Below are positions 3,011-44,435 of a stretch of 64,000 nucleotides of DNA, piece by piece. How positions within the stretch are numbered: position 1 is the stretch's first letter; each line of letters starts with the position of its first letter. The notes below the pieces were generated by a model, which made no database searches, had not been told where the DNA came from, and saw only the letters and a list, made by a program, of their open reading frames with translations. This stretch comes from Mobula hypostoma (lineage: Eukaryota): contig NC_086105.1 in assembly GCF_963921235.1 (NCBI RefSeq), positions 14,198,001 to 14,262,000 of the forward strand, given 5' to 3'. The position numbers and the translations under genes are program-made.

Positions 3011-3225
3011 TTCTTGATTCTCATGCCTCCATAGTCTCTTCAGCCGCCTCTTTCAGGACTCTGGAGTGTACACCATCTGGTTCAGAGACTTTACTACCTT
3101 ATGACTTCCAGTTTCCCAAGAACCTTCTCTCCAGTTATGGCAACTTTACATACTTCATGTCTTCTGACAGCTGGAACTTCCACCATACTGCTAGTGTTTT
3201 CCACAGTAAAGACTGATGCAAAATA

Positions 3226-4271
3226 GGGTTCCCCTGGTCCTCACCTACCACCCCACCAGCCTCCGGGTCCAACATATTATTCTCCGTAACTTCCGCCACC
3301 TCCAACGGGATCCCACCACTAAGCATATCTTTCCCTCCCCGCCTCTCTCTGCATTCCGCAGGGATCGCTCCCTACACAACTCCCTTGTCCATTCGTCCCC
3401 CCCATCCCTCCCCACTGATCTCCCTCCTGGCACTTATCCGTGTAAGTGGAACAAGTGCTACACATGCCCTTACACTTCCTCCCTTACCACCATTCAGGGC
3501 CCCAAACAGTCCTTCCAGGTGAGGCATCACTTCACCTGTGAGTCGACTGGGGTGATATACTGCGTCCGGTGCTCCCGATGTGGCCTTTTATATATTGGTG
3601 AGACCCGACGCAGACTGGGAGACCGCTTTGCTGAACATCTACGCTCTGTCCGCCAGAGAAAGCAGGATCTCCCAGTGGCCACACATTTTAATTCCACATC
3701 CCATTCCCATTCTGACATGTCTATCCACGGCCTCCTCTACTGTAAAGATGAAGCCACACTCAGGTTGGAGGAACAACACCTTATATTCCGTATGGGTAGC
3801 CTCCAACCTGATGGCATGAACATTGACTTCTCTAACTTCCGCTAGGCCCCACCTCCCCCTCGTACCCCATCTGTTACTCTTTTTAATGCACACATTCTTT
3901 CTCTCACTCTCCTTTTTCTCCCTCTGTCCCTCTGAATATACCTCTTGCCCATCCTCTGGGTCACCCCCCCCCCGTCTTTCTTCCCGGACCTCCTGTCCCA
4001 TGATCCTCTCGTATCCCCTTCTGCCTATCACCTGTCCAGCTCTCGGCTCCATCCCTCCCCCTCCTGTCTTCTCCTATCATTTTGCATCTCCCCCTCCCCC
4101 TCCAGCTTTCAAATCCCTTACTCACTCTTCCTTCAGTTAGTCCTGACGAAGGGTCTCGGCCTGAAACGTCGACTGCGCCTCTTCCTATAGATGCTGCCTG
4201 GCCTGCTGCGTTCACCAGCAACTTTGATGTGTGTTGCTTGAATTTCCAGCATCTGCAGAATTCCTGTTGTT
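3226..4271 (+). mobile_element. Penelope-like element, 5'-truncated, with open GIY-YIG endonuclease region and 3' tail
   Basis: ORF 3216-3845 has CxxxxCxxC, GVIYCVRCSRCGLLYIGET (GIY-YIG) and GMN end. TSD TGCAAAATA at 3217-3225 and 4272-4280. Inserted into a minus-strand CR1. Confidence 0.9.
4139..4174 (+). ncRNA. Minimal type I hammerhead ribozyme (PLE-associated), intact core
   Basis: AGUC-CUGACGA-AGG(gucucgg)CCU-GAAA-CGUC-GACU: stem I AGUC/GACU, CUGANGA and GAAA boxes, palindromic minimal stem III, predicted cleavage after C4170. Confidence 0.75.
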
Positions 4272-6252: not shown

Positions 6253-6537
6253 TGTTGTTATGCAATTAATTCAAAGGTAGGACAACCTCTCATCTTTTCC
6301 CCCATTTTACCTCAGTTCCATCCTAAACATCTGCATTCCCCTTTCTTTTAAAGAAGCAAACCTTTTCTAAGTAAAATTAAACAAATTTATGCTTAGGGCA
6401 CTGAATGTTTTTTTCTGGCTCCATTGCCTCTGGTTGAGGAGATGAATGTGGAGGATATACCGTTTGTAAATGAAACGTCTTTATATTACACAAAGGCCTT
6501 TGCTTTGCGATTACATGCGTACTGCTCCAATTTGCAG

Positions 6538-6744
6538 AGTGTGGAAGGGGAACACCATGAAAAGGCAGTGGAATTGCTGAAGGCTGCTCAGAACAGTGTG
6601 AAACTGGTGGTGCGTTACACTCCAAAGGTGCTGGAAGAAATGGAGGCGAGATTTGAGAAACTGCGGACTGCCCGACGCAGGCAGCAGCAGCTTCTGCTCC
6701 AGCAGCAACAGCAGCAGCAAGTTCAGCAAAATCATATGTCATAG
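6538..6744 (+). CDS. LIN7A: Last coding exon of protein lin-7 homolog A (C-terminal part of the PDZ domain plus polyQ tail)
   Basis: Acceptor ...ccaatttgcag|AGT at 6537/6538. Translates [68 protein letters not shown], matching the LIN7 PDZ end and the LIN7A-type polyQ-NHMS tail. TAG at 6742-6744 is followed by a GTGAGA donor. No upstream exons were recognised in this window. Confidence 0.95.
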
Positions 6745-6972
6745 GTGAGAGTATTGAAATTATCTTTCAACCTCAAAGTTCAAGTACATTTCCTCAAATT
6801 GTGGTGCAAAATCAAAAGCAAGTCTTATGAGTAGCGAACCACACAATCTTTCAGAGTAAAGAAACAATGACATAGGTCCTTCCACTGGCTATGGAGCAAT
6901 GATCTAAGTTATTAGGAGATACAACGGAAATGTTGTTCAAAAGTTCAAAGTAAATTTATTATCAAAGTAAGT

Positions 6973-24766: not shown

Positions 24767-25136
24767 ACTTACTGGTAAACAGTTTTTGTGCATTGAGAAA
24801 CAGACTAAGTTTCTGCAGACGCTGCCTGATCTCCTGAGTATTTCTAACATTCTCCCATTTCCAGCATTTACATTTTATCTGCTTTTATTTACTGATTCAC
24901 TATTGTTCCACCTTTAATCTTTCCAAATAATTCATTTTGTATTTCATTCCTTAAGGTATATTGGCTCTTGAAAAGGTTAAAAAGACAAAAGTACTGTGGG
25001 TGACTTGGAATGCAACTCCACTTAAAATTCCCTGCACTGATTGTTAGTTACGTGCAGGTCTAGAAGTACACAAAGCAGGAAATCTGTCTTTTGTGGAAAT
25101 TCAGGGGACTAGAAAAAAAGGAATGTGGAGCTGTAT

Positions 25137-25698
25137 GTGTTCATACATCGTCGACATCGATGAGGACCTCAACACCATTATGATGGTTTCGAGACTAGTG
25201 CGTGATTTGGATTTAAGTGAGGGAGAGTTGCACAGCGTCAGCCTCTCTCTCTCTTCCCAATTCCCATCTGGATCCAGTGGCAAGACAGAGTCTAGACGGC
25301 TGGAGATGGGACTAGATGCAGTGGATGACCAGGACGTCTTCTGTGTCTTGTCCTGCTCTACACATTCCACAATGCATGCAGAGACCGCCTTCTTGACCGT
25401 TGGACCTTCCGCTGGTCTCGTCCACTCAATCCGCCGGAGTCTGTCTTCACATGCTGGGATAGACATCTCCCTACCTCACCGAGGGTTTGAGACCCATCGG
25501 CTACCCTCACCTGGTTTAGCCGGCTTGTCGAAGCCGTTGTCCGGGGTGTGGCCACTGTCGCATGCAAACAGCTACAGGGAGCCACAGGTGAGAGCTGAGT
25601 GCCAGGTGGGGACCAAAGGTGGACTAACTGCCTTGAAAAGGACGCGACATGTTCCCCCACCAGAAGTGCTACCCCTCCCTGACACTCTATACACCCCA
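25137..25698 (-). mobile_element. Non-autonomous RTE-type retroelement/SINE, full length with TSD
   Basis: CpG-rich 562-bp insert flanked by a direct repeat GAGCTGTAT (25128-25136 and 25699-25707). The minus strand starts GGGGTGT. Resembles RTE 5'UTR-derived SINEs (recollection, not searched). Confidence 0.75.
25506..25697 (-). ncRNA. HDV-like self-cleaving ribozyme at the 5' end of the RTE-type element
   Basis: P1 GGGGUGU(25697-25691)/ACACCCC(25549-25543); P2 CUCACCUG(25592-25585)/CAGGUGAG(25513-25506); P3 GGC(25583-25581)/GCC(25552-25550); L3 starts UCC and can form P1.1 with GG (25542-25541); P4 CGGCUU-cgac-AAGCCG; J4/2 GCUAA with putative catalytic C at 25519. Confidence 0.75.
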
Positions 25699-26545
25699 GA
25701 GCTGTATACTCAGGGCAAATAAAGCTAACTCCCTGTTTATGAGGTACGAGTGACCCACTTCTGCATTTTATGTGCAGTGCAGAGCAGTATCCCGTGGAAT
25801 GGGCAGAGAAAGGCACCCTGAGTGGGAAAGTTGATAGGCACAATGATGAATAAATTTCTCATGCAGAATTTCCCCATGGGTGATATCAGAATGTTGCAAG
25901 CAATGTTTTCCCATTTTTGCGCTTACTTTTCCATTATTTACACCCACATTTCCTGCCAAATTTTAGTGTAGGCTGAAAAATAAAAATTACCGCAAATGAT
26001 CAGGACCTTCATAAAAGAACAAAATTCACACCATAAACTTCACGTGTGAAAATTAGAAATGTCATCCATTGTTCGTTCCCACACACAAAGCACAGCATGT
26101 TTCAGAAAATGCAATCGTTTAGGCTTTTCAATGTTTATAGAGCATAATTTTGCATTATAAATATATTCAATGAAACCAACTATCAAGTCTTTTGAGCTAC
26201 TTAACCCGAAACGCTGTGTGATATTTCTCAAGTGAATGGAACCCTTGTGAAACCATAATCCATTGTTTGTATTATCAACATTCTGACTCAAGGTTCCAGG
26301 AAATCTGACATTAAAGAAGTTGCACAACTCATCGTTTTCTTCCAACTTTGATAATTAAAAACATCCTCAATTTCAAGTGTGTTTTTTCATTCTTTTCTTT
26401 CTATAACATTGCCTAACCTATTTCAATTTATTTTTGATGTTTAAATTATTCATATGCATCCATCAGTTTCAAAACAACAGAGGCCAACTGTTTTCGCTCA
26501 ATATTAGCATTCTTCCATCATGTATACCAAACTCTCTAACTAAAC

Positions 26546-28289: not shown

Positions 28290-29690
28290 CCAGCAAGACC
28301 TTTATTGCCCGTCCCTAAATGCTCTTGAGAAAATGGGATACTGGAACCCCAGCAGACATTCCGGTAGGGTAAGGAATTTGCAGATTTAGACTGTCCAGGA
28401 TTCTATTTTCATATCATGATTGTGTGCACCTTGGAGAGGGACGTGTGAGTGGTGGTGGACCCATGACATTCATGATGGTGGAAGCTGTCAGACTGTCCAA
28501 GCAAGTAAATAGTGCATATTACCAGCATTGCATCAAAGTAGTAGAAGGAATGTATGTTTTGGATGGTGAACGGGGTTCCATTAAGCAAGCTGCTTTAACC
28601 TGTATGACGTTAAGCTTCCTGAATGTAGAAGATGTCCTCTCCCAGGCAAGTGAACAGTATTCCATCACTCTTCTTGCAGATAGTGGAAAGGCTTTGGGAA
28701 TTAGGAAATGGGGCAATTGCTGGGTTACTGAGCTATCTTTGTAGCCATTCTATTTGTGTGACTGGTCTACCCGAATTTCTGTTTAGTGGTGAACCCATGT
28801 TATTGCCGGTGGGGAAATTCGATGATGGTAATACCATTGAAAGCCAAGGGACATGGTTATATTCTGTCTTGATGGAGAAGATTATCCTCCGGCACCAATG
28901 TTACCTGCCAATGATCATAAACATGAAAATGTCTGCAGATGCCAGAAATCCAGAGCAACACACACAAAATTCTGAAGGAACTCAGCAGGTCAGGCAACAT
29001 CTGTGGAAATGAATAAATAGTCGACATTTTGGGCTAAGACTTTTCTTCAGGACTGAGAGGGAAGGGGGAAGATGCCAGAATTGAAAGGTGGTGTGAGGGG
29101 AAGGAGGCTAGCTGGAAGGTGATAGGTGAAGCCAGCTGGATAGGAAAGGTCAGGTGCTGGAGAAGAAGGAATCTGAAAGGAGAGGAGAGTGGACAATAGG
29201 ACAATTACCATTTTGTTAAATTGCCAAGGCCTGGCTGCAAGGAGCAAACATCCCTTCTTCTGACAGAAGGGAATGAAGGCCATTTATGCAACAGGTGAAG
29301 ATAATTAGGCCTAAGACTTGGCCTTGAGGAACTCTGCAATGAAAATACTGCGGTTGCTGACTTCAAATGAAAATACTATTTCTGTTTGTGTCAAATGAGA
29401 CTTCAACAATTGGGGTATCTTCCACTGAAGCCCACAGATTTGAATTTTATTAGGTCTTCTTCAATCTCTCAAAGCATTCTCCACCTCACCTCAACTTTGG
29501 AATTCAACTCTGTGACCTATGCAATAAGATTTGAAGCTGGCTGGTGATGCTGAAACCCAAAGTGAGCAGCTTATCAATAACCTCGTGCTGACAACACTTC
29601 CAGCAATAGCTTCTGTTACTTTGTTGATGACTGAGAGCAGATTAATTGGAGAGTAGCTAGCCAGATTGGATTTCTCCAATCATCTAGCAA
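28290..29690 (-). mobile_element. Degraded CR1/L2-group LINE with nested Penelope tail (about 28918-29200)
   Basis: Minus-strand KSNLASYSPINLLSVINKV and VMEYCSLAW...LNVIQVKAACL remnants. Confidence 0.6.
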
Positions 29691-33169: not shown

Positions 33170-33940
33170 CTGGTAAATTGGTTTATTATTGTTACGTGTA
33201 ACTGGGTGGACTGAAAAACTTGTCTTACATACCATCCATACAAAACAGTTCATTACAACAGTGCATTCAGGCAGTATAAGGTAATACAATTACAGAGTGC
33301 AGAAGAAAGTGTAATAGTACAGAGAAACTAGCGTAGATAGACAGTGAGGTGCAAGTCACAACAAGATAGATTGTGAGGTCAAGATTCCATCTTATCATAC
33401 TAGGGACCCAATCAGTAGTCTTATAACAGTGGGATAGAAGCTGTCCTTGACCCTTGCTTGCAGGGCTTTTTATTTTCTGCCCGATGGGAGAGGGGAGAAG
33501 AGAGGATGTTCGAGGAGGGTGTGGTCTTTGATTATGTTGGCTTCTTTACCCAGACAGGGAAAAGTGAGTCTACTGAGGCTGGTTTCTGTGATGTCCTGAG
33601 CTGTGTTTGCAACTCTCTGCAGTATCTTCTAGTCTTGGGCAGTACAGTTGCCATACCAAGCTATGGTGAATCTAGATAAGATGCTTTCTATGTTATAGGG
33701 ATTAAAATTGATGAGTGTCAAAGGGTACATGCCAAATTTCATTAGCCTACCGAGAAAGCAGAGGCATTGGAGAACTTTTTTTTGCCATAGAGTCGATGCT
33801 GTTGGAGCAGGGTAGGCTATTGGTGATGCTCACTCCTTGGAACTTGAAACTCTCAACCCTCCCAATTGCAGCACCGCTATTGTAAATGGCAGACTGTGCA
33901 CTGGCCACTTCCCCACCCCTTCATGAAGTCAATGACCCAC
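33170..33940 (-). mobile_element. Rex1/Babar LINE 3' part
   Basis: tttattattgt tail, gggatagaagctgtcc, and aagtcaatgac (minus-strand VIDF) remnants. Confidence 0.7.
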
Positions 33941-33954
33941 CTCTCTCCAACACT

Positions 33955-36365
33955 TAGTTCCAAGGGTTTAGATGGGGCAGAATTTGTTAAGTGTGTCCAG
34001 GATGGATTCCTGTCACAGTATGTGGACAGGCCGACCAGGGGGAATGCCATACTGGATCTAGTACTAGGTAATGAACCGGGTCAGGTCACAGATCTCTCAG
34101 TGGGTGAACATCTGGGGGACAGTGACCACCGCTCCCTGGCCTTTATAATTATCATGGAAAAGGATAGAATCAAAGAGGACAGGAAAATTTTTAATTGGGG
34201 AAAGGCAAATTATGAGGCTATAAGGCTAGAACTTGCGGGTGTGAATTGGGATGATGTTTTTGCAGGGAAATGTACTATGGACATGTGGTCGATGTTTAGA
34301 GATCTCTTGTGGGATGTAAAGGATAAATTTGTCCCGGTGAGGAAGATAAAGAATGGTAGGGTGAAGGAACCATGGGTGACAAGTGAGGTGGAAAATCTAG
34401 TCAGGTGGAAGAAGGCAGCATACATGAGGTTTAGGAAGGAAGGATCAGATGGGTCTATTGAGGAATATAGGGAAGCAAGAAAGGAGCTTAAGAAGGGGCT
34501 GAGAAGAGCAAGAAGGGGGCATGAGAAGGCCTTGGTGAGTAGGGTAAAGGAAAACCCCAAGGCATTCCTCAATTATGTGAAGAAAAAAAGGATGACAGGA
34601 GTGAAGGTAGGACCGATTAGAGATAAAGGTGGGAAGATGTGCCTGGAGGCTGTGGAAGTGAGCGAGGTCCTGAATGAATACTTCTCCTCGGTATTCACCA
34701 ATGAGAGGGAACTTGATGATGGTGAGGACAATATGAGTGAGGTTGATGTTCTGGAGCATGTTGATATTAAGGGAGCGGAGGTGTTGGAGTTGTTAAAATA
34801 CTTTAGGACAGATAAGTCCCCGGGACCTGACGGAATATTCCCCAGGCTGCTCCACGAGGCGAGAGAAGAGATTGCTGAGCCTCTGGCTAGGAACTTTATG
34901 TCCTCATTGTCCACGGGAATGGTACCGGAGGATTGGAGGGAGGTGAATGTTGTTCCCTTGTTCAAAAAAGGTAGTAGGGATAGTCCGGGTAATTATAGAC
35001 CAGTGAGCCTTACGTCTGTAGTGGGAAAGCTGTTGGAAAAGATTCTTAGAGATAGGATCTATAGGCATTTAGAGAATCATGGTCTGATCAGGGACAGTCA
35101 GCATGGCTTTGTGAAGGGCAGATCGTGTCTAACAAGACTGATAGAGTTCTTTGAGGAGGTGACCAGGCATATAGATGAGGGTAGTGCAGTGGATGTGATC
35201 TATATAGATTTTAGTAAGGTATTTGACAAGGTTCCACATGATAGGCTTATTCAGAAAGTTAGAAGGCATGGGATCCAGGGAAGTTTGGCCAGGTGGATTC
35301 AGAATTGGCTTGCCTGCAGAAGGCAGAGGGTTGTGGTGGAGGGAGTACATTCAGATTGGAGGATTGTGACTAGTGGTGTCCCACAAGGATCTGTTCTGGG
35401 ACCTCTACTTTTCATGATCTTTATTAACGACCTGGATGTGGGGGTAGAAGGGTAGGTTGGCAAGTTTGCAGATGACACAAAGGTTGGTGGTGTTGTAGAT
35501 AGTATAGAGGATTGTCGAAGATTGCAGAGAGACATTGATAGAATGCAGAAGTGGGCTGAGAAGTGGCAGATGGAGTTCAACCCGGAGAAGTGTGAGGTGG
35601 TACACTTTGGAAGGACAAACTCCAAGGCAGAGTACAAAGTAAATGGCAGGGTACTTGGTAGTGTGGAGGAGCAGAGGGATCTCGGGGTACATGTTCACAG
35701 ATCCCTGAAAGTTGCCTCACAGGTGGATAGGGTAGTTAAGAAAGCTTATGGGGTGTTAGCTTTCATAAGTTGAGAGATAGAGTTTAAGAGTCGCGATGTA
35801 ATGATGCAGCTCTATAAAACTCTGGTTAGACCACACTTGGAGTACTGTGTCCAGTTCTGGTCACCTCACTATAGGATGGATGTGGAAGCATTGGAAAAGG
35901 GTACAGAGGAGATTTACCAGGATGCTGCCTGGTTTAGAAAGTATGCATTATGATCAGAGATTAAGGGAGCTAGGGCTTTACTCTTTGGAGAGAAGGAGGA
36001 TGAGAGGAGACATGATAGAGATGTACAAGATAATAAGAGGAATAGATAGAGTGGATAGCCAACGCCTCTTCCCCAGGGCACCACTGCTCAATACAAGAGG
36101 ACATGGCTTTAAGGTAAGGGGTGGGAAGTTCAAGGGGGATATTAGAGGAAGGTTTTTTTACTCAGAGAGTGGCTGGTGTGTGGAATACACTGCCTGAGTC
36201 AGTGGTGGAGGCAGATACACTAGTGAAGTTTAAGAGACTACTAGACAGGTATATGGAGGAATCTAAGGTGGGGGCTTATATGGGAGGCAGGGTTTGAGGG
36301 TCGACACAACATTGTGGGCCGAAGGGCCTGTACTGTGCTGTACTATTCTATGTTCTATGTTATAT
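33955..36365 (+). mobile_element. CR1 LINE, 5'-truncated ORF2 (endonuclease end plus RT), young
   Basis: [45 protein letters not shown] and [10 protein letters not shown] motifs; premature TAG at 35453-35455; ttctatgttctatg tail. Confidence 0.95.
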
Positions 36366-43062: not shown

Positions 43063-44435
43063 TTCAGAGTTCAAAGTAAAGTTATCAGAGTACATACATG
43101 TCACAACATACAACGCTGAGATTCTTTTTCTGCTTCGCTGTGAACTGTAAACGTCAGGAACTATGAACTGTAAACAAACTGTGCAAATACAGATATAAAT
43201 AAATTGCAATAAATAATGAACATGAAATAACATAGTAACATCCATCAACATAACAAAATAACGGAGCCCTTAAATGAGAGTAGCTATCCCCTTTTGTTCA
43301 AGAGCCTGATGGTTGAGGGGTAGTAATTGTTCTTAAACCTGGTGGTGTGAGTCCTGAGATATCTGCACCTTCTATCTGATGGCAGCAGCGAGAAAAGAGC
43401 ATGGCCTAGGTGGTGAGGATCTTTAATGATGGATGCTGCTTTTCTACAGCAACAGTTCACGTAGATGTGCTTAATGGTTGGGAGAGTTTTCTGCTCAAAG
43501 GCATTGCTGTTCCCATCCCAAGCCGTAATGCAGCCAGCCAGCAATCTTTCCACCACACATCTACAGAAGTTTGTCAAGGTTTTCGATAACATGCTGAACC
43601 TACACAGACCCCTGAGGAAGTAGAGGCCCTGTAGTGCTCTCTTCGCTATAATATTTAAATGATGGGTCCAGGTCAGGTCCTCTGTGATAGTCACACCCAG
43701 AATTTTAAAGTTACTGACCCTTTCCACCTCTGATCCTCTGATGATTACTGGTTCATAGACCTCTGGTTTCCCTCCCCTGAAGTTTACGATCAGTTCCTTG
43801 GTCTTATTGACATTGGCTGTTGTTATTAAACCACTCAGCCAAGTTTTCAATCTCCCTCCTGTGTGCTGATTCATCACTCCTTTGATACAGTCCACAACAG
43901 TGGTGTCATCAGCAAACTCTTATATGGTGTTGGAGCTGTACTTAGTCAGCCAGTCATGGGTGTAAAGTGAGTAGATCAGGAGGCTAAGCACACAGTCCAG
44001 TGGTGCTCCTGTGCTGATGGAGATGGTGGAAGAGGATTTTTTCCAACCCAAACTGACTGGGGTCTACAGGTGAGGAAATCCAGGATCCAATTACACAAGG
44101 GGGTATTGACACCCAGGTCTTGGAGTTTACTGCCTAATTTTGAGGGGATGATGGTGTTAAGTGCTGAGTTGTAATCAATAAAGAGCTTTCTGATCTATGT
44201 ATCTTTGCTGCCCAGATGTTCCAGGGTTCTGTGAAGAGCCAACGAGACAGCACCTGCTGTAGACCTGTTGCTTCAGTAGGTGAATTGGAGCGGATTCAAG
44301 TCACCATTCAGACAGGAACTGATATACTTCAATACCAGCCTCTCAAAACACTTCATCATTGTGGATGTAAGTGCCACTGGGCGATAGACATTTAGACAGG
44401 TTACCACAATCTTCTTGGGCACTGTACGATTGAAG
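43063..44435 (-). mobile_element. Rex1/Babar LINE RT 3' part
   Basis: NVNKTKELIVNFR, VERVSNFKILGV and FSLLPSDRR motifs; upstream FADDTTVV and [15 protein letters not shown] remnants. Confidence 0.9.

Follow-up and report, generated by a model that had tools for sequence, protein, structure and literature searches.

An internally deleted RTE-type LINE of Mobula hypostoma that probably carries an HDV-like ribozyme at its 5' end

The locus, the element and its parent LINE

We analysed a 64,000-nt stretch of the Mobula hypostoma genome, hereafter referred to as the window (GCF_963921235.1, NC_086105.1, forward-strand positions 14,198,001-14,262,000; coordinates below are window positions unless a locus is named). 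The last LIN7A-like coding exon lies on the plus strand at ~6530-6760 and ends in ...VQQNHMS, and a 561-bp element occupies 25697-25137 on the minus strand, ~18 kb downstream of this exon and antisense to LIN7A. With the final coding exon ending near plus-strand position 6760, the element is intergenic or downstream of the gene, and a location within a LIN7A intron was rejected. An earlier note on this DNA had proposed a SINE that cuts itself out of read-through transcripts; for a copy lying ~18 kb past LIN7A and antisense to it nothing points to such release, and the window copy is most likely a dead-end insertion. Elsewhere in the window, a retroelement ORF with a GIY-YIG domain (3216-3842, plus strand) may represent a Penelope-like element, an RVT_1 reverse transcriptase (33866-35452, plus strand) is unrelated to the tail of the element family, and a further retroelement ORF (43287-43895, minus strand) gives an ALKBH8_N-like match.

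The element is bordered by a 9-bp target-site duplication (TSD), ATACAGCTC, with the 5' copy at 25699-25707 and an identical 9-mer as the 3' copy at 25128-25136. A single extra T (25698) separates the 5' copy from the first nucleotide of the element (G1, 25697), and the earlier statement that helix P1 begins at the first base of the TSD-defined element is accurate except for this one base. Self-blast revealed no second copy inside the 64-kb window. A 209-aa ORF (25093-25722, plus strand) runs antisense through the whole element, and its counterparts on other copies in Mobula birostris and M. hypostoma bear the annotation 'uncharacterized protein', with 63 representative 'proteins' of this kind in the protein library. 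This ORF was rejected as a gene, since its only Pfam match (Tox-GHH2, 18.9 bits) falls below the 25-bit cut-off; its 'homologues' were likewise set aside as other copies of the repeat, and a search for protein relatives of a 72-aa piece of the antisense ORF returned no candidates. An antisense repeat ORF thus explains 'uncharacterized proteins' called in manta-ray genomes.

Further copies were found through the 'proteins' predicted on the repeat and through relatives of an endonuclease fragment (loci L001 and L004-L012), and by a metagenome pattern scan (L002 and L003, in each of which the pattern match lies at a cut 5' contig end; a further, full copy is present in L003 at 1795-1989). Not counting the window copy, the ribozyme region was recovered in full or nearly so from eight copies and in part from two more, whereas a covariance model of the P2-P3-P4 domain (R1) added none in the 211 kb of sequence searched. 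Most of the recovered copies head LINEs. L010, a 4.1-kb contig, has an intact 1092-aa ORF with Exo_endo_phos and RVT_1 domains (PF03372, PF14529 and PF00078) behind a ~790-nt 5' UTR; L005 is a 4-kb LINE whose 11-bp TSD (ACTTATGTCGT) ends directly before G1; and in L001 the ribozyme runs on into the N-terminus of an APE-type endonuclease. By its ORF domains and its endonuclease relatives, which bear the name 'craniofacial development protein 2', the partner LINE is probably RTE-type. L011 is a related RTE, its endonuclease sharing 65% aa identity, and its contig starts within the 5' UTR; over its positions 1-130 the downstream 5' UTR is related and 92 nt at the place of the ribozyme 3' half are unrelated, so that it may carry a different 5' module. 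An endonuclease fragment annotated to the tubeworm Lamellibrachia satsuma (P0006) is 78% identical to a piece of the ray RTE endonuclease, a similarity exceeding that of most other matches and pointing to either horizontal transfer of this RTE lineage or contamination.

The parentage of the element is seen in its alignments. Its remaining body downstream of the ribozyme region (25193-25505, minus strand) is collinear with the 5' UTR of the RTE LINE: element positions 5-505 align to L010 positions 26-538 with 74% identity, and L005 and L008 align to element positions 1-505 (blastn). The 56-nt 3' tail (25137-25192, minus strand), of the form GGUCCUC.UCGA..UCGAC..GAACA, resembles a LINE 3' end; its local alignment to the 3' end of L005 scored 31 against a shuffle mean of 16.2 (sd 3.1, maximum 35), the similarity being modest because L005 belongs to another subfamily. 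These alignments indicate that the LINE's first 505 nt are joined to its 56-nt 3' tail, and by this composition the element appears to be an internally deleted RTE-type LINE of the R2 'SIDE' design. ARAGORN detected no tRNA-like sequence in the element head, and an Rfam search gave no 7SL or 5S match. The earlier label of a non-coding RTE-type SINE is therefore apt only in part: the element is RTE-related and non-autonomous, but a pol III SINE was rejected, as there is no tRNA-like head and the LINE's own 5' UTR, joined to the tail, takes that place.

The HDV-type arrangement in the window copy

By direct reading and by script, we found all helices of the HDV order (P1, P2, P3, P1.1 and P4) on the minus strand at 25697-25506, where the earlier note had placed them, and all of their pairs in this copy are Watson-Crick. 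P1 comprises seven pairs between GGGGUGU (25697-25691) and ACACCCC (25549-25543); the 5' heptamer recurs in L001, L005 and L003, and the 3' strand is identical in 10 of 11 copies. P2 comprises eight pairs between CUCACCUG (25592-25585) and CAGGUGAG (25513-25506), with 94% of cells paired across the copies and no covariation. P3 pairs GGC (25583-25581) with GCC (25552-25550), the latter invariant in all 11 copies and directly adjoining the P1 3' strand; the whole helix order, including this junction, is common to nine of nine full copies. P1.1 is formed by C25579/C25578, the second and third bases of loop L3, with G25541/G25542, the GG that comes right after the P1 3' strand. Then follow J1.1/4 (25537-25540), which reads ACAA here, GCAA in the copy's own subfamily and UAAA, CAAA or UACA elsewhere, and the P4 hairpin (25521-25536), with six pairs between CGGCUU (25536-25531) and AAGCCG (25526-25521) and a CGAC loop. 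The -1 nucleotide is U (25698), as had been reported, and the predicted scissile bond is 25698/25697. Three positions of the window copy within the ribozyme (25540, 25554 and 25576) depart from the consensus of its subfamily, but every helix remains intact.

The joining regions required one correction. J4/2 had been given as the 5-nt GCUAA and is actually the 7-nt GCUAAAC (25514-25520), A25515 and C25514 having been skipped; the putative catalytic residue named within it, C25519, is present and invariant in 11 of 11 copies. One unpaired U (25584) links P2 and P3, and a canonical C-N-R-A form of J4/2 would require a U25584-A25515 pair together with a bulged C25514; all three positions are invariant. 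The peripheral J1/2 domain (25593-25690, 98 nt) forms a long irregular hairpin, whose closing helix (25687-25678 with 25606-25597) has nine Watson-Crick pairs and one G-U pair, in agreement with the earlier reading.

We assessed the significance of the single copy with a relaxed HDV descriptor (J1/2 up to ~250 nt, L3 6-40 nt), which matched the window at the element and at one other site, plus-strand 28480. Markov-resampled sequence with the dinucleotide frequencies of the window gave 0.71 matches per 64 kb when P2 had 6 bp or more and 0.073 when it had 8 bp or more; the second match (28480-28690, plus strand; L3 25 nt, P2 6 bp) is at the chance level of 0.71 per window. MFE folding gave a z-score of only -1.6, and RNAalifold favours a rival nested fold in which the P1 5' strand pairs with the P2 5' strand. 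The window copy alone is weakly significant, and for this reason the case is built on its 5'-end position and on family conservation. Standard HDV models do miss the motif, as had been expected: cmscan returned no Rfam HDV-family match at E up to 10 for the window region or for L003, L010 and L011, and neither an HDV-family nor any other ribozyme at gathering score across the whole 64-kb window. Covariance models score neither pseudoknots nor large insertions.

Family conservation and the position of the 5' end

Contigs of seven sequencing runs (seven species labels) were aligned to the region at an identity of at least 80%, and each run contributed thousands of them. In the five richest runs the summed depth across 25146-25697 was ~1e5-1e6, compared with ~19 in the flanks. 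At 25698 the depth drops ~1000-fold, a collapse present in seven of seven runs that bears out the predicted clustering of family 5' ends at G25697, and it collapses again near 25137-25145, also in all seven. Among contigs continuing into unrelated flank, two stop aligning at 25698 and one at 25697. Read with caution, these data, which cover at least seven related species, suggest that the element is present in some 10^4 copies, to an order of magnitude.

The 5' terminus itself carries a tandem P1 strand of the form GGGGUGU-AU-GGGGUGU-C. The internal repeat is intact in L003, L007, L009 and L010, and L010 carries the internal copy only; in the window copy it is degenerate (AGAGUGU, 25682-25688, minus strand), and it is mutated throughout the window subfamily (AGAGUGU, GAGGUGA or GGGGUGA). 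The repeat unit measures 9 nt in L003 (1795-1812) and 8 nt in L009 (about 3181-3165), and is single in L010 (about 4095), which suggests recurrent 5'-terminal duplication of P1. This pattern matches the 5'-extension model of R2, in which P1 duplication followed by mutation of the inner copy produces a longer 5' end and a larger J1/2 (PMC3774820). Moreover, a T precedes G1 in all six sequenced 5' junctions (window, L001, L003, L005, L009 and L010), and two of the three flank-spanning contigs seem to show it as well. It lies within the TSD in L005 and is an extra base in the window, and it could reflect a non-templated A on the cDNA, a target preference, or a mobile RNA whose first base is the one just 5' of the predicted cut.

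These features bear on whether a real ribozyme might work at another cut site, either at the internal P1 repeat (the equivalents of 25688-25682) or one base upstream of G1. The intact second GGGGUGU of four loci, the sole copy in L010, and the strong over-representation of T at -1 would fit such a site. However, because the internal copy is mutated in the window subfamily, only the terminal P1 pairs fully with ACACCCC there; the T at -1 in L005 belongs to the TSD; and in R2, non-templated additions and microhomology have been described at ribozyme-defined 5' junctions. We therefore consider a displaced cut site unlikely.

The copies are 72-84% identical overall, and this identity is unevenly distributed. 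Mean pairwise identity is 0.93 across P2, P3 and the UCC of L3 (25592-25578), 0.91 across the end of L3, the P3 and P1 3' strands and P1.1 (25554-25541), and 0.91 across J4/2 and the P2 3' strand (25520-25506), compared with 0.68 in J1/2, 0.74 in the L3 insert, 0.60 in J1.1/4, 0.73 in P4 and 0.63-0.80 in the downstream UTR. The alignment thus supports the HDV-type motif as the best-conserved part of the family 5' region. C25519 and the downstream AAAC are conserved; the bases after C25519 read UAA, CAA or UGA, and the C-N-R-A pattern is invariant.

Covariation, which the earlier note had suggested testing across P1-P4 and the L3 hairpin, is present in P4, where three pairs carry compensatory changes. 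At pair 2, the window and two LINE copies have G-C, six others have C-G and L006 has a decayed G-U, and among the contigs the minority letters at 25535 and 25522 match each other as C-G and as U-A; pair 3 passes from G-C to G-U and on to A-U in loose-end consensus sequences from two runs (X11 and X12); and pair 5 is U-A, U-G or C-G. In total, 8 of 60 predicted pairs still pair despite two-sided changes, six of them in the J1/2 domain. P1, P2, P3 and P1.1 gave no covariation among the recovered copies, as their strands never vary, and L011 added nothing for P1 or P2, its contig being cut at the 5' end and its ribozyme 3'-half region unrelated. The double pseudoknot is consequently argued from conservation and topology only.

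This invariance leaves room for a reading in which the conserved 5' block is a structured RNA or DNA element with some other job, acting for instance as an internal promoter, as a signal for RT or translation, or in RNA stability, and the HDV fit is coincidental. No pair of the four core helices is proven by covariation, random sequence yields 0.07-0.7 relaxed-descriptor matches per 64 kb, and the nested fold from RNAalifold and the lack of Rfam matches in the sequences scanned are in line with such a view. Yet the family-specific HDV details go beyond chance, namely P3 abutting the P1 3' strand, a GG that pairs CC at L3 positions 2-3, the invariant C-N-R-A in J4/2 and a G at L3 position 6. 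Furthermore, P1 starts at the first base of the insertion in TSD-defined copies, and HDV-like ribozymes are already known in RTE elements (PMC6765202). A coincidental fit accordingly strikes us as quite improbable.

The most unusual part of the motif is L3, which spans 28 nt in the window copy (25553-25580, minus strand) and 25-28 nt across copies, compared with the usual ~7-8 nt. It consists of UCC, two variable bases and an invariant G (G25575), followed by an inserted stem-loop and a final G (G25553 here) before the P3 3' strand that is common to all subfamilies; the consensus of the window subfamily starts UCCCCG, and a second subfamily has AA at 25577-25576. The insertion, of 15-19 nt, is placed just before the P3 3' strand. 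Its 4-bp stem, GCUG (25572-25569) with CAGY (25557-25554), is common to all subfamilies, is 92.5% paired, closes a loop of 9-11 nt and shows a single compensatory change, from C-G to U-A in L008 (GUUG/CAAC). The earlier description of a 28-nt L3 with an inserted hairpin is correct, but the 7-bp hairpin belongs to this copy only; as a family trait it was rejected, since the consensus C at 25576 creates a C-A mismatch. In the genomic HDV ribozyme L3 starts UCCUCG, and in HDV the last L3 base at the place of the final G is dispensable. The ray L3 thus seems to keep an HDV-like 5' half, with the insertion right before the P3 3' strand. No description of an L3 stem-loop insertion in HDV-like ribozymes was found in the searchable literature, whose reach does not extend to the key 2009 and 2011 papers.

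It is very improbable that the motif descends from an HDV-like ribozyme disabled by the L3 insertion and the extra J4/2 bases, with the 5' end set otherwise: although no precedent for a 25-28-nt L3 was found in that literature and L3 is normally tightly spaced (PMC3774820 describes the deviation of one wasp R2 as substantial), the insertion is common to all subfamilies, is also found in L010 with its intact ORF, and is therefore older than the amplification to ~1e4 copies, the ribozyme core has been under strong constraint since, and the inserted stem still pairs.

Interpretation and comparison with known systems

Overall, we read the window element as an internally deleted ray RTE-type LINE headed by an HDV-family self-cleaving ribozyme, with a probability of about 0.78. 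We hold with much the same confidence that master copies of the family self-cleave as HDV-like ribozymes, while the window copy itself would have a slightly better than even chance of cleaving in vitro. Counting against the HDV reading are a 25-28-nt L3 beside the active site, a canonical core that needs a bulge (two extra J4/2 nt and one P2-P3 base), and a G1 that pairs with C, unlike the G-U wobble of HDV. In the proposed mechanism, master copies without a promoter of their own would be transcribed within a longer RNA; the ribozyme, formed by the first 192 nt, would cut 5' of G1 and set the RNA 5' end; the RTE endonuclease/reverse transcriptase, acting in trans for the deleted derivative, would recognise the 3' tail; and the RNA would be copied into a new site by target-primed reverse transcription. 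We favour, with moderate confidence, the broader picture of an active HDV-family ribozyme in rays that tolerates an L3 stem-loop, has spread to ~1e4 copies or more as part of an RTE LINE and of its deletion derivative, and has had its P1 strand duplicated repeatedly at the 5' terminus. If true, a non-site-specific LINE would show cleavage-site migration, which has so far been proposed for R2 only.

The genomic HDV ribozyme has a P1 of 7 bp, a P3 of 3 bp, an L3 starting UCCYCG, a GG after the P1 3' strand that forms P1.1, GCAA after P1.1, and a J4/2 of the form GC-N-AA. The ray motif displays these traits (with GCAA in the subfamily of the window copy), but differs in its 98-nt J1/2, its L3 insertion, a G1-C rather than G1-U pair and its biological context. 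RTE-derived SINEs of marsupials and squamates combine a tRNA head with an RTE or Bov-B tail. Like these, the ray element is short and non-coding and would depend on an RTE-clade LINE through a common 3' tail; unlike them, it lacks a pol III-type head and begins instead with the LINE's own 5' UTR and the ribozyme in it.

The occurrence of HDV-like ribozymes in RTEs is established (review PMC6765202). As in the RTE and R2 ribozymes covered by that review and by PMC3774820, the ray motif is a nested double pseudoknot at the 5' end of a promoter-less LINE, with a large variable J1/2, a variable P4 and a conserved P3/L3/P1.1 core, and its predicted cut site would set the element 5' end. Compared with what those sources describe, it differs in its cartilaginous-fish host, its 15-19-nt L3 stem-loop insertion, a P2 that needs a bulged C for a canonical J4/2, a G1 paired with C and not U, and the lack of an Rfam HDV-family match. 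HDV-like RTE ribozymes in cartilaginous fishes were not found in the searchable literature, which again does not take in the key 2009 and 2011 papers. Large HDV-like ribozymes are known to be activated by a structured J1/2 domain, or 'pinch', closing P1 onto P2 (PMC4908430), and the long J1/2 hairpin of the ray copies fits such an activating peripheral domain.

Like R2 SIDEs (PMC3414825) and NARTc of Trypanosoma cruzi (PMC3383444), the window element joins the parent's 5' ribozyme to its 3' end and would be non-autonomous and mobilised in trans. Unlike them, its parent is a non-site-specific RTE, and it keeps 505 nt of 5' UTR, well beyond the ribozyme; the ray family, counting LINE 5' ends and deleted copies together, also numbers ~1e4 copies, whereas R2 SIDEs are rare. 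The principle is thus already established, both for ribozyme-headed RTEs and for ribozyme-plus-tail deletion derivatives. What the ray family would add is an HDV-like ribozyme family of very high copy number in a vertebrate, shared by several related ray species, an L3 stem-loop variant that the Rfam models missed here and that probes the tolerance of the HDV active-site loop, and naturally occurring stages of P1 duplication at the 5' terminus, relevant to the question of how the cut sites of ribozymes shift.
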